This document shows, piece by piece, positions 18,173-40,556 of a stretch of DNA of 64,000 nucleotides (the first letter of the stretch is position 1; every line of letters begins with the position of its first letter). The position numbers and the translations under genes were made by a program. The DNA is taken from the sequence record PV740454.1; one strand, given 5' to 3'. The notes beneath the pieces are model-generated. The model searched no databases. It worked only from the letters and a program-made list of their open reading frames with translations, and had not been told where the DNA came from.

Positions 18173-18249
18173 AAAAGGGTTGACACATGTCAGCCCTTTT
18201 TTGTATTATAGCTACATCAAAACGAAACACGAAAAAGGAAAACATTATG
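18173..18249 (+). promoter_or_regulatory. terminator-fused early promoter/leader cassette
   Basis: GGGTTGAC-ACAT-GTCAGCCCTTTTTT; TTGACA-18-TATTAT; AAGGAAAACATT-ATG. Confidence 0.85.
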
Positions 18250-18471
18250 AACATCAACGACACTATCAAACAAGTTATCGCATACCGTGCTACTGAAGAA
18301 GGTAAACATGCTCATATCGCTGTATACCCTCGTAACTTCTTTCTTCAATCACCTTCAGTTCTTGTATGGCACCCAGAACAAGATAACAAAGATGTCGCTA
18401 TCTCTGAACAAGAACTTAAAGAATGGCGCGCTGCCGCTCGTGTTCATAAATTCATCGACATCGTTAAGTAA
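18247..18471 (+). CDS. hypothetical protein
   Basis: Cassette ATG. Confidence 0.7.
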   Translation: MNINDTIKQVIAYRATEEGKHAHIAVYPRNFFLQSPSVLVWHPEQDNKDVAISEQELKEWRAAARVHKFIDIVK

Positions 18472-18480
18472 GGATTCATT

Positions 18481-18657
18481 ATGATTTCAACAATCGCTGC
18501 TATACTAATAGCGTTCATGCTACTCGTGCTGGTAGTCAATGAGTTCAAAAACTTTCTAGATGATGACACCCGCGCTTACATAATCATTACAGCAACTGCT
18601 CTTGCAATCACTAATGCATATGCTGTTTTCAAACTAGAACACTATCTCATACCATAA
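18481..18657 (+). CDS. small 2-TM membrane protein A (58 aa, not in ORF track)
   Basis: AAGGA SD; MISTIAAILIAFMLLVLVVNEFKNFLDDDTRAYIIITATALAITNAYAVF. Confidence 0.65.
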   Translation: MISTIAAILIAFMLLVLVVNEFKNFLDDDTRAYIIITATALAITNAYAVFKLEHYLIP

Positions 18658-18666
18658 GGATAGACC

Positions 18667-18861
18667 ATGACTGTTATCATACTATTCCAAATGAGTATAT
18701 TCGCACTACTGCTGATGATACTCGTTAATGACAACAACAAATTCCTAGCAGATGGTGTCAAAGAAATACTACTCGTATCTGCTATCACTATATGTCTGAT
18801 TAATACTTTCTTTATCAGTCAATACGCAAGCATGTACAACATGCTAATGGAGAAACTATGA
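18667..18861 (+). CDS. small 2-TM membrane protein B, paralog of A
   Basis: AAGGA SD; LVNDNNKFLADGVKE aligns with VVNEFKNFLDDDTRA. Confidence 0.65.
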   Translation: MTVIILFQMSIFALLLMILVNDNNKFLADGVKEILLVSAITICLINTFFISQYASMYNMLMEKL

Positions 18862-19019
18862 CACTACTAACTATGATAATACTATTCGTCGTGCTGTCTA
18901 TAATCACAGTAACAATAGCTATTAGCTTTATCAACAACCCTGGCTTCATTAAACTAATGATTTTCGCTATCACAGGCTTTATCGCTTATGTGCTACTGAA
19001 TGTGATAGTCGCATCATGA
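18858..19019 (+). CDS. small 2-TM membrane protein C (53 aa, not in ORF track)
   Basis: ATGA overlap, GGAG SD; two hydrophobic helices around NNPG. Confidence 0.6.
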   Translation: MTLLTMIILFVVLSIITVTIAISFINNPGFIKLMIFAITGFIAYVLLNVIVAS

Positions 19020-19105
19020 GTGATATACCAATCAATTATATCATGCTTCTGCTATGCGTTCTAGCAGGGGTAGCTGGATGGTGCTTGAGCGATATCGGCA
19101 AATGA
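19016..19105 (+). CDS. small membrane peptide D (29 aa, not in ORF track)
   Basis: ATGA overlap; ends GWCLSDIGK. Confidence 0.45.
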   Translation: MSDIPINYIMLLLCVLAGVAGWCLSDIGK

Positions 19106-19121
19106 CTATATAAGGCAAACT

Positions 19122-19301
19122 ATGTTTATTATCTCAATCGCTATTTTTCTATCTGCAATCTACCTAATATGGACTGATAATAGCACAGATAACCTAGAAA
19201 GAATCTTAGCGCAAGTGATACTGCTAATGGCAGCAGCAATCAACTGCGTAGCTCAATGGGCTCTAAGCGACATTCTATCAGTAACGATGACTATATCATG
19301 A
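19122..19301 (+). CDS. small 2-TM membrane protein E (59 aa, not in ORF track)
   Basis: TAAGG SD; contains QWALSDI like D. Confidence 0.55.
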   Translation: MFIISIAIFLSAIYLIWTDNSTDNLERILAQVILLMAAAINCVAQWALSDILSVTMTIS

Positions 19302-19403
19302 TGTACTGCAAAAACGCTTAGAATACCACACAGACAGGCTCAGAGCATAGTACAACACTCATTGTTTTTTAATATATCGCACCCCGGTTCGTTTTCTACA
19401 ACA

Positions 19404-19512
19404 TGTGGGTAAATCTGTGGATAATATGTGTGTGAGACTGTGCATAAGTGTCTGAGATATGTGGATAAAAACAGAAATCAACTGTGGATAAGTCTGTGGA
19501 TTACGTGGATAA
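19404..19512 (-). repeat. array of seven co-oriented DnaA boxes (candidate origin or DnaA sink)
   Basis: TGTGGATAA at 19416, 19460, 19483; TGTGCATAA 19439; one-mismatch boxes at 19404, 19495, 19504; in gene-free gap 19302-19670. Confidence 0.8.
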
Positions 19513-19670
19513 GTTTTTTGGCTAAAAATAGCAAAAGGCTCATCGGGAGTGGTGGGAATTAGAGAACATCGAAGAACATCGAAGGTGGTAAAGAACTTAC
19601 ACCATTTCTGAAAAATAATTTGACACCACTTGCGCTTATGTGAGAAGATAGCGCGGTGAGAGGAGAGAAT

Positions 19671-20195
19671 ATGAAACAATTGATATTAAAAGATCGCATG
19701 AGTTTGCGCGTGGTAGATCAAGTGCATAGAGTGCATTACCATACGTTGCGACATGAGAATCGAACTGGTATGCCGTTTAATGTTGAGTGTAAAGGTGATG
19801 ATTGTGTTGTGTGTTCGCATGTTGACGGGTTGATTGCAGCACAGAAAGGTTCAGAGGCGTGTAATTTACGAGCTAAAGTGCAATACCAAGTGCGAGTAAT
19901 CGACTTGAATGATGTATCGAGTGGTGTACAAGTGTTGTGTTTCAGTCGCACGTTGCTTGATGCCGTGACTGATGCGCTTGAAGGTTCAAACGAGCGTGAG
20001 TATCGACCACTTGAGATACGTTCATCTGAATTTGCTCGTGGGTTTCGTAGTTATAGAGATTCATTTGCTGGTAATGTTATTCGTACAGCAATTAAGATGA
20101 AATTCAAGTCAACTGAAGAGTACAAGCTACCGTTTTACATTACGCCGTATGATGCTGATGCGATTCTGCGACATTTATTGAAGGGGTTAACATGA
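19671..20195 (+). CDS. gp32-like Zn-binding OB-fold ssDNA-binding protein lacking acidic tail
   Basis: H...C...CxxC ligands; RAKVQYQVRVID, GVQVLCFSRTLLDAV, GFRSYRDSF parallel T4 gp32 KRKTSYWANILV, GKVFKYRFGKKIWDKI, GFSNYDESKF. Confidence 0.65.
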   Translation: MKQLILKDRMSLRVVDQVHRVHYHTLRHENRTGMPFNVECKGDDCVVCSHVDGLIAAQKGSEACNLRAKVQYQVRVIDLNDVSSGVQVLCFSRTLLDAVTDALEGSNEREYRPLEIRSSEFARGFRSYRDSFAGNVIRTAIKMKFKSTEEYKLPFYITPYDADAILRHLLKGLT

Positions 20196-20338
20196 TTACA
20201 TTAGCTTTGTTCTATATGAGTCGAGATATGAGTTACAGCGAACGACCAAGTGACTTGTATATGGGTACAGTGATATTAGATTTTGCCTTAATCGCGACTG
20301 TGTTTTGTGGTATTATGATGTTTACGGGAAATTGGTAA
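20192..20338 (+). CDS. small membrane protein (48 aa, not in ORF track)
   Basis: ATGA-type overlap, GGGG SD. Confidence 0.5.
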   Translation: MITLALFYMSRDMSYSERPSDLYMGTVILDFALIATVFCGIMMFTGNW

Positions 20339-20952
20339 TGAAAAAGATTGAATTGAAGAAGAAAGTAATAGAGAAGAAAGGTGTCTTGCCAGATCAAGTT
20401 ATGGTGCGAGTTGAGACGTATTACCGTTCATTGAGTGGTTATTTGAATCATCTAAGTGCTGAGCATAAGTTACGTGGTATTACTTATTCTACGCATATGC
20501 TTGTTACAGAAGATGGTGCATTCTTCAGTATTGACGAAGACCGTTTGAATGGTGATAAGCAGACACGTGAAAAGCACGATGGTCAGTTAGTTGCAGTACA
20601 TGCGCGTTTACAATTGCCATCGAAAGATTGGGATTGGTATCCATGCAAGTGGAAAAGCGGTCGTCTTGTGTATACGTACAAAGAGCAAGATTTCGTAGAA
20701 GAAGAACACGAGCTAGTGGTTGGTGAGATTATCGACATTTATGCTGCTGATGATGAGCAAGCACGTTCGCCTCATGATGCAACTATCATTGTGAGTCGTC
20801 CGAAGCAAATCGTTGTTGAAGCGTATAGTAGACTTGCGATATTCCATGTTAGTAATGCAGAGAACAATGGTGATTTGATTTCTGATTGTGGTGAGTATCG
20901 TTTAAGTGGCAAGTACGCTGCTAGTGAATACGACGAAGAGCTTCATTCGTAA
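20338..20952 (+). CDS. hypothetical protein
   Basis: TAATG coupling. Confidence 0.7.
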   Translation: MKKIELKKKVIEKKGVLPDQVMVRVETYYRSLSGYLNHLSAEHKLRGITYSTHMLVTEDGAFFSIDEDRLNGDKQTREKHDGQLVAVHARLQLPSKDWDWYPCKWKSGRLVYTYKEQDFVEEEHELVVGEIIDIYAADDEQARSPHDATIIVSRPKQIVVEAYSRLAIFHVSNAENNGDLISDCGEYRLSGKYAASEYDEELHS

Positions 20953-20961
20953 AAGTTAAAG

Positions 20962-21042
20962 AAAAGGGTTGACACATGTCAGCCCTTTTTTGTATTATCT
21001 CTATATCGAAACGACATCGACTAACAAAGAGAGAATATTATG
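20962..21042 (+). promoter_or_regulatory. terminator-fused early promoter/leader cassette
   Basis: Same hairpin and leader as 4200. Confidence 0.85.
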
Positions 21043-39872: not shown

Positions 39873-40556
39873 ATGTTTGATTTACTGTTTAACATCAACC
39901 ACACTGTGTTTTCAATAGGCGATTATGCAGTATCTGGTCTAGAACTTTGGGCTACAATCACTGGCTTGGTATGTGTCATCATGGCGCGTATGAACATGAA
40001 GCACAACTTCACAGTCGGCATTGTGAACTGTATCGGATTTGCGATTCTGTTCTTTCAGATTCAGCTATACAGCGACGTGCTCTTACAGGGATTCTTCATT
40101 GCAGCAAGTGCATACGGGTTCTATCAGTGGAATAAGAAAGACGACGATGAAGTCCTCATTCAATATATGACGCCGCTAAGCACGTTCCTTGCTATCAGCT
40201 TAACCGCTATCGCAACATACGCACTTACCCACAGCATTGACACGATAATGTGGATAAGTGGCAACATTCTTGTGGATAACTATGAACATATCCCAGCAGC
40301 ACTATCTGGATTAGATGCATTCACAACGTGTGCGAGTATCATGGCGTTCATGCTGATGATTCAGCGTAAAGTCGAAGCGTGGTTGTTCTGGGTAGCAGTG
40401 AACGTCGTGTGTATCTACAACTACAGCGCACAAGGTGTTATCGTAGTCGCAGTCGAGTACTGTATCTTCCTAATGAACGCTATGTTAGCGGTATTAACGT
40501 GGCATCGTGAAGCATCACAAAACAAGTTGATGCTTGACTTGAAAGAGCAATGGTGA
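39873..40556 (+). CDS. pnuC: nicotinamide riboside transporter PnuC
   Basis: LELWATITGLVCV, YSD..LQ.FF...YG.YQW, DAFTT, RK.E.W..W..VN. Confidence 0.9.
   Translation: MFDLLFNINHTVFSIGDYAVSGLELWATITGLVCVIMARMNMKHNFTVGIVNCIGFAILFFQIQLYSDVLLQGFFIAASAYGFYQWNKKDDDEVLIQYMTPLSTFLAISLTAIATYALTHSIDTIMWISGNILVDNYEHIPAALSGLDAFTTCASIMAFMLMIQRKVEAWLFWVAVNVVCIYNYSAQGVIVVAVEYCIFLMNAMLAVLTWHREASQNKLMLDLKEQW

Follow-up and report, generated by a model that had tools for sequence, protein, structure and literature searches.

Conserved cluster of DnaA boxes in Vibrio phage CZ01

Vibrio phage CZ01, a member of the Straboviridae that infects Vibrio natriegens, is an nt-1-like lytic T4-type phage of the KVP40 group. 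Its genome (PV740454.1; 247,138 bp) was found to contain an array of seven closely spaced DnaA boxes in a conserved, non-coding intergenic region of 369 bp (Table 1). Positions given below refer, unless stated otherwise, to the window, i.e. the stretch of 64,000 nucleotides that was analysed, which corresponds to bases 1-64000 of the record; over 17-22 kb the sequences of nt-1 and CZ01 are 94% identical. That the array is a genuine, selected set of sites for the host DnaA is well supported by the box statistics and by the comparison with related phages, on which the core idea of a preliminary description of this DNA, namely that a T4-type phage carries an array of host-DnaA boxes, is borne out. 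Judging from the same comparisons, the array is also quite likely to be bound by the host DnaA.

As the consensus we used the 9-mer given for both E. coli and V. cholerae in Table 1 of PMC4285127, which reports that V. cholerae DnaA recognizes the same box as its E. coli counterpart. Three of the seven boxes match this 9-mer perfectly and four with one mismatch. They share a single orientation, start at positions 19404, 19416, 19439, 19460, 19483, 19495 and 19504 (start-to-start spacings of 12, 23, 21, 23, 12 and 9) and are close to register with an 11-bp period (R = 0.87). Outside the array, boxes with at most one mismatch number 21 in the window, i.e. 0.036 are expected per 109 bp, and the Poisson probability of seven boxes in such a span is 1.5e-14 (3e-11 after genome-wide correction). 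The gene-free gap of about 370 bp with seven DnaA boxes noted in the preliminary description is therefore confirmed. If any base is allowed at position 5, the relaxed box has 9 exact matches in the window, 4 of them in the array, and 7 scattered matches in the other 183 kb of the genome. The array is the sole such DnaA-box cluster in the 247-kb CZ01 genome.

A separate observation concerns a gene encoding a PnuC-like transporter, which contains two perfect boxes in the same orientation (40249 and 40271, 22 bp apart) and a one-mismatch box on the opposite strand at 40225 (cluster 40225-40279). The 64-kb window has six perfect boxes, of which all but one belong to this pair or to the array, and the pnuC stretch has a DNA-level match in nt-1 only.

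Conservation of the array among related phages

The gap was aligned with MAFFT to its counterparts from nt-1, QD01, VS2, VH7D, phi-Grn1, F86 and KVP40. The identical seven-box layout was found in the same syntenic gap of nt-1, QD01, VS2, VH7D and phi-Grn1, while the more distant F86 retains approximately four boxes; BLAST coverage of gap positions 9-245 indicates that the array is also present in Va3, phi-ST2, ValKK3, R10Z, R11Z, XZ1, PVA23 and VS1. Column conservation amounts to 92-96% in the boxes, 76-80% in the spacers and 66-72% in the flanks. Among six phages, 6 of the 63 box columns are variable, and three of these six correspond to position 5, at which the relaxed consensus accepts any base (P = 0.015).

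The KVP40 gap is collinear with that of CZ01 and retains the left block, the right block, the promoter and the downstream genes, yet every box position exhibits 2 to 7 mismatches and no site with one mismatch or fewer is left. By parsimony, the array would be ancestral and would have been lost in the KVP40 lineage; since that lineage let the boxes decay, we regard the array as accessory. Synteny across KVP40-like genomes, suggested as a check in the preliminary description, is thus observed for the array in nt-1, QD01, VS2, VH7D and phi-Grn1, but not in KVP40 with its decayed boxes, and not for the gene directly downstream of the gap (CZ01_041, hereafter ORF41), which apart from CZ01 occurs in nt-1 only.

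The triple-box core and bacterial DnaA-box clusters

Boxes 5-7, with spacings of 12 and 9, form a compact core, which we searched for with a 29-nt pattern based on the phage alignment, in which five positions were two-fold degenerate. Exact matches to the pattern were found in 17 bacterial genomes, which belong to several phyla, and in 5 IMG/VR contigs, in all cases with unrelated flanks. The first two boxes of the core are separated by a 3-nt spacer that is far more constant than expected by chance and is shared by at least 3 of 10 viral triple-boxes. In two viral contigs the core is located within open reading frames (ORFs), in differing frames and on differing strands, because of which we regard it as a DNA-level motif. 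One Actinomycetota site lies just upstream of gyrA, and the site in a Peptoniphilus genome is bordered by the 3' end of tsaD (gcp) on one side and that of an ABC-F gene on the other. The latter position matches that of DBC[gcp-ydiF], one of the DnaA-box clusters (DBCs) of B. subtilis, a high-affinity DnaA region that is among the strongest outside oriC (PMC3245932, PMC4447404). The six B. subtilis DBCs jointly restrain initiation (PMC3245932, PMC4447404) and, besides titrating DnaA, they regulate neighbouring genes (PMC3245932).

Two further observations were made on the core copies. In the unrelated IMG/VR contig L017 the core lies within an ORF (2117-2839 of that contig), for which a gene-embedded phage origin is one possible explanation, and many core copies are located close to the end of a contig (within 150-700 nt).

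The occurrence of the core in unrelated viral contigs as well as in bacteria could mean that it is a small mobile DNA module. This would be in line with the possibility that the repeats do not function as DnaA sites in practice, being bound by some other (phage) protein or representing a functionless, captured relic of a bacterial or plasmid cluster, a possibility which we consider quite improbable. A relic is not expected to have its boxes better kept than its spacers, with the variation concentrated at the position tolerated by DnaA; and, as no Vibrio was found among the 17 bacterial genomes with the core, a recent capture from a Vibrio chromosome is not indicated. Three boxes are perfect matches to the highest-affinity box of the host, and no DnaA-like protein is present among the phage annotations. 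Masking of the boxes by DNA modification was considered as well and rejected: only about 0.17% of guanines in nt-1 carry the 7-deazaguanine modification (PMC6884629), and therefore masking is not expected. The 7-deazaguanine pathway genes of CZ01 are located outside the window, at 71.5 kb and 236-241 kb of the genome.

In the searchable literature we found no paper that contains the core string or that connects DnaA boxes to T4-like phages, vibriophages or KVP40. The impression voiced in the preliminary description that such a module had not been described for T4-type phages agrees with this, as no paper in that literature describes the array.

Candidate role as a sink for host DnaA

The best explanation we can offer is that the gap is a cis-acting cluster for host DnaA, i.e. 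a phage counterpart of the non-origin clusters known from bacteria, such as datA of E. coli and the DBCs of B. subtilis. DnaA may assemble cooperatively on the array, and the many copies of phage DNA per cell would multiply it, so that its high-affinity sites would greatly outnumber those of the host chromosome; DnaA would then be drawn off the origin of Vibrio chromosome 1, and new initiation in the host would be shut off. That the array soaks up host DnaA in this manner as the phage DNA amplifies is proposed tentatively, as a plausible possibility: every step beyond the selected DnaA boxes is something we infer, and titration is suggested by the architecture of the array. Like datA and the DBCs, the array is an intergenic cluster of several boxes of the high-affinity type without an unwinding element, and its triple-box core is letter-for-letter the same as the Peptoniphilus tsaD/ABC-F site. 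Unlike them, it resides on a lytic phage genome that multiplies in the course of infection, so titration would act against the host and not in cell-cycle control. Of the two alternatives offered in the preliminary description, datA-like titration fits the evidence better than an oriC-like origin, given the absence of origin hallmarks.

Several points weigh against titration. The array is always situated 110-130 bp upstream of a conserved promoter, a location that would suit a transcriptional role equally well. The array is flanked by short AT-rich tracts (19350-19376 and 19510-19535), and the loss of the boxes in KVP40 is compatible also with an origin, because T4-type origins are individually dispensable. 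Furthermore, another protein could recognize the same 9-mer, and the benefit of titration to a T4-type phage with its own replisome is speculative.

The array as a possible DnaA-dependent origin

Alternatively, DnaA bound to the array could open a flanking AT-rich tract, after which the phage-encoded gp59/gp41 loader and helicase would take over. Such a reading, which we consider rather unlikely, is in agreement with the array being the only DnaA-box cluster of the genome, with its intergenic location between short AT-rich tracts (up to 0.76 AT over 25 bp) and next to a promoter, and with the fact that no origin has been mapped so far in this phage group; for phi-Grn1, a skew-based guess placed the origin at 51 kb, in a paper which also states that the skew follows transcription (PMC5107563). 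However, the AT-rich tracts measure just 16-25 bp and no unwinding element of origin size is present; the 369-bp gap has no GATC site, compared with 2.7 per kb in the window; and neither terminal box is accompanied by a GC-rich stretch and DnaA-trio repeats (according to the criteria of PMC8235120). Moreover, the change of strand skew at the gap delimits a 1.5-kb island and no genome-scale switch (see below). With these hallmarks lacking, the oriC-like bidirectional origin envisaged in the preliminary description fits the evidence less well than titration. All the boxes point one way, as they would in half an origin or in a titration site. KVP40-type phages, which lack the boxes, possess the same replication genes, and CZ01 itself carries a complete T4-type replisome and recombination set, including the gp59/gp41 helicase loader and helicase. 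It also appears unlikely that the whole clade of lytic T4-type vibriophages uses DnaA at the array to start, or to help start, replication from a hybrid origin, in which the bacterial initiator would hand over to the T4-type helicase loader. Such an origin, if real, would be the first in Straboviridae to depend on a host initiator.

The comparison with origins of known types leads in the same direction. With bacterial oriC (of Vibrio chromosome 1 or E. coli) the array shares the 9-mer, the presence of several boxes and the helical register of some of them, but it has no long AT-rich element, no GATC cluster and no genome-scale skew switch, and its boxes have one orientation. In the origins of temperate phages and plasmids such as P1 oriR, pSC101 and RK2 oriV, the boxes are paired with iterons and an initiator of the element's own, and DnaA also affects the lambda pR promoter. 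CZ01 resembles these systems in being a mobile element with its own boxes for the host DnaA; it differs from them in that no iterons or initiator gene were found and in that the carrier is a lytic T4-type phage that itself encodes a helicase, a loader and a primase. The T4 R-loop origins oriF and oriG consist of a MotA-dependent middle promoter and a downstream unwinding element and need no host initiator. Like them, the CZ01 array lies in intergenic, regulatory DNA beside a promoter of a T4-type genome; inspection of the gap by eye revealed no Mot box (as described in PMC4122927) properly spaced from a -10 element. A GCTTA-containing motif is present at 19315-19324, with no -10 element at the proper distance (also by eye only).

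The array as a possible transcription element

The putative promoter downstream of the array consists of a -35 hexamer, a TG motif and a weak -10 element (Table 1). As this -10 element matches the consensus at three of six positions only, the promoter was not called by the promoter scan, but no variation in the -35 hexamer or in the TGTGAGA stretch is seen among CZ01, nt-1, QD01, VS2, VH7D, phi-Grn1 and KVP40. DnaA on the array might tune this promoter, or it might block read-through from the upstream early operon in the manner of an insulator, so that the small membrane operon would follow the DnaA state of the host. We regard this possibility as doubtful. It would be consistent with the order of array, promoter and 48-aa ORF, which is constant in all relatives, with the single orientation of the boxes, which suits a polar block, and with the result of the terminator scan, which identified no terminator between CZ01_040 and the array; regulation of neighbouring genes by the B. 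subtilis DBCs offers a precedent (PMC3245932). On the other hand, the boxes are located 108-220 bp upstream of the -35 hexamer and do not overlap the promoter, and KVP40, which lacks the boxes, has kept both the promoter and the genes. To our knowledge, moreover, known DnaA-regulated promoters use fewer than seven boxes.

We also considered that the gap might have a product, either that of the ORF on the minus strand at 19359-19679 (annotated in QD01 as QD01_174) or a small RNA with a structure. The minus-strand frame is open over 101-106 codons in CZ01, QD01 and VS2, but it is broken or absent in VH7D, KVP40 and F86, and the boxes fall in different frames; the ORF was rejected on account of its lack of conservation in these three phages. 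With regard to an RNA, a search of the gap against Rfam returned no match, and the left conserved block exhibits no conserved structure on the plus strand and just a weak hairpin, without covariation (i.e. compensatory changes), on the minus strand. A coding or RNA role is therefore highly improbable. The right part of the gap contains a tandem 10-bp duplication (19564-19583) that is specific to CZ01 and not present in nt-1.

Strand skew around the gap

The preliminary description reported an inversion from a C-rich to a G-rich strand at the gap. The change of sign is present: GC skew is about -0.2 at 18.2-19.4 kb and ranges from +0.14 to +0.48 at 19.4-20.95 kb. However, it falls to approximately 0 at 20.95 kb, exactly at the next PeSL element (see below), and is negative again at 22.2 kb, while the cumulative skew rises monotonically over 1-61 kb and the genes are all on the plus strand. 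The same pattern is seen at third codon positions, where the GC3 skew is -0.68 to -0.08 for CZ01_035 to CZ01_040, +0.37 to +0.54 for ORF41 to CZ01_043 and -0.31 to -0.20 for the genes at 22.2-22.8 kb, compared with a mean of -0.07 (sd 0.18) for the plus-strand genes of the window; besides the positive GC skew, the third positions of the 19400-20950 island exhibit an excess of T over A. The change of skew is the edge of a 1.5-kb island of unusual codon use in a mosaic region and not a switch between leading and lagging strands. This suggests that the cassette composed of the array, the promoter and the genes from ORF41 to CZ01_043 has a history different from that of its neighbours.

ORF41 and its supposed relationship to gp32

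ORF41 is annotated, like all genes that flank the array, as "hypothetical"; these genes are all encoded on the plus strand. It differs from its nt-1 homolog by 14 synonymous and 18 non-synonymous codon changes and by an indel of 6 nt that leaves the frame intact, and on these grounds it is probably a real gene. It is present only in CZ01 and nt-1, between the conserved promoter and the conserved gene for a small membrane protein; QD01, VS2, VH7D, phi-Grn1 and KVP40 have the 48-aa membrane ORF directly after the promoter, which argues that ORF41 is a lineage-specific insertion and not a partner of the array. A 179-aa ORF located upstream of the array in VS2 was considered as a counterpart and rejected, as it is unrelated to ORF41.

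The preliminary description presented ORF41 as a gp32-like gene for a single-stranded DNA-binding protein, a tail-less paralog. None of the sequence comparisons supported this relationship at a significant level. A HMMER search of 1.84 billion representative sequences reported the nt-1 homolog and one other match, to P0002, a low-complexity repeat protein, which was rejected as spurious, and no match was found in Pfam (even at E <= 10), PHROGs, NCBIfam, PADLOC or PDB. The genuine gp32 of CZ01 is encoded at 166331-167251 of the genome and, as a positive control, matched PF08804 with an E-value of 1.8e-68; the direct BLASTP comparison of ORF41 with this protein was not significant (E = 0.46). 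Comparison with a profile of 30 gp32 sequences by hhalign yielded a weak collinear alignment over 92 columns (P = 0.054, probability 1%), and a custom gp32 hidden Markov model gave ORF41 a score of -0.7 bits, reached or exceeded by 165 of 3000 shuffled sequences (empirical p = 0.055). ORF41 is thus collinear with the core of the T4 gp32 family (PF08804) without statistical significance, and the weak alignment includes a C-x2-C pair and an upstream His/Cys3-like spacing that resembles the gp32 zinc site. In contrast to the CZ01 gp32, which has both a basic N-terminal and an acidic C-terminal region, ORF41 has neither, so the designation "tail-less" is correct as far as the acidic tail is concerned. 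Two AlphaFold models, one based on the ORF41 sequence alone and the other on an alignment of two sequences, had a predicted local distance difference test score (pLDDT) of about 33, too low for a fold search.

Neighbouring genes and cassette structure

Upstream of the gap, CZ01_036 to CZ01_040 are annotated in both CZ01 and nt-1 and correspond to the five tiny membrane ORFs of the preliminary description, which are confirmed: two hydrophobic segments are present in four of them, and one in the fifth. Their weak mutual similarity is consistent with an origin as tandem paralogs. Relative to nt-1, CZ01_037 and CZ01_040 are under clear purifying selection, while CZ01_036 and CZ01_038 evolve fast, with non-synonymous codon changes at least as numerous as synonymous ones. 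In VH7D a homolog of the CZ01_039 type is located just before the gap, and the set of mini-genes upstream of the array varies between the relatives. On the other side, CZ01_043 is also under purifying selection according to its codon changes relative to nt-1; for this protein we obtained no assignment in Pfam, NCBIfam, PADLOC or PDB.

In nt-1 and KVP40, PeSL elements delimit cassettes that shuffle inside hyperplastic regions (PMC4122927). Both ends of the CZ01 locus (18173-20998) carry an A/G-rich stem-loop overlapping an early promoter of the sigma-70 type, in agreement with the description for nt-1 (PMC4122927), i.e. the whole locus is framed by two elements of the nt-1 type. The cassette thus delimited is part of a hyperplastic region of early genes. 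As the model of PMC4122927 predicts, the gene content around the array varies among the relatives; the DnaA array itself, however, lies outside the PeSL motif and is unmentioned in that paper. The mini-ORFs, ORF41 and the skew island lie next to the array in a region that shuffles; they are not working parts of an origin module. The single replication module proposed in the preliminary description, in which mini-proteins, array, skew switch and gp32 paralog would act together, is accordingly not retained: the upstream genes vary, ORF41 is confined to CZ01 and nt-1, and the skew signal is an island.

Table 1. Sequence features of the array-containing locus of phage CZ01 (window coordinates)
Feature	Position	Strand	Remarks
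PeSL element opening the cassette	18173-18209	+	stem-loop (12 pairs) and early sigma-70 promoter TTGACA-18-TATTAT, 11/12 promoter match
Small membrane-protein ORFs CZ01_036 to CZ01_040	18481-18657, 18667-18861, 18858-19019, 19016-19105, 19122-19301	+	annotated in CZ01 and nt-1
Conserved non-coding intergenic region, 369 bp	19302-19670		no annotated feature in CZ01, nt-1 or VH7D
Left conserved block	19310-19400		motifs 19315-19324, 19340-19348 and 19371-19383 retained even in KVP40 (alignments)
Seven-box DnaA array, 109-bp span	19404-19512	-	canonical 9-mer reads on the minus strand
Triple-box core (boxes 5-7, spacings 12 and 9)	19483-19512	-	29-nt core
Right conserved motif	19539-19546		also in KVP40 (alignments)
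Putative sigma-70 promoter	19620-19649	+	-35 TTGACA 19620-19625; 18-bp spacer; TG 19641-19642; weak -10 19644-19649
ORF41 (CZ01_041), 174 aa, Cys/His-containing orphan	19671-20195	+	sole homolog nt-1 VPFG_00225
CZ01_042, 48-aa single-pass membrane protein, phrog_16778	20192-20338	+	always found downstream of the gap, in every relative
CZ01_043, 204-aa conserved protein, phrog_13976 (8e-115)	20338-20952	+	PHROG match
Next PeSL element, closing the cassette; end of the G-rich island	20960-20998	+	stem-loop and near-consensus early promoter

Implications

Replication that is independent of the host initiator has its textbook example in the T4-type phages. The CZ01 locus calls for caution in the prediction of origins, as a DnaA-box cluster combined with a local change of skew can mimic an origin in genomes composed of shuffled cassettes. 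At the same time, the phages that bear the array (nt-1, CZ01, VH7D, ValKK3 and others) and those of the KVP40 type, in which the boxes have decayed, form a natural contrast. A selected, clade-wide array implies that some T4-type phages interact with DnaA, be it for the silencing of the host, for the sensing of the host state or for the start of their own replication.

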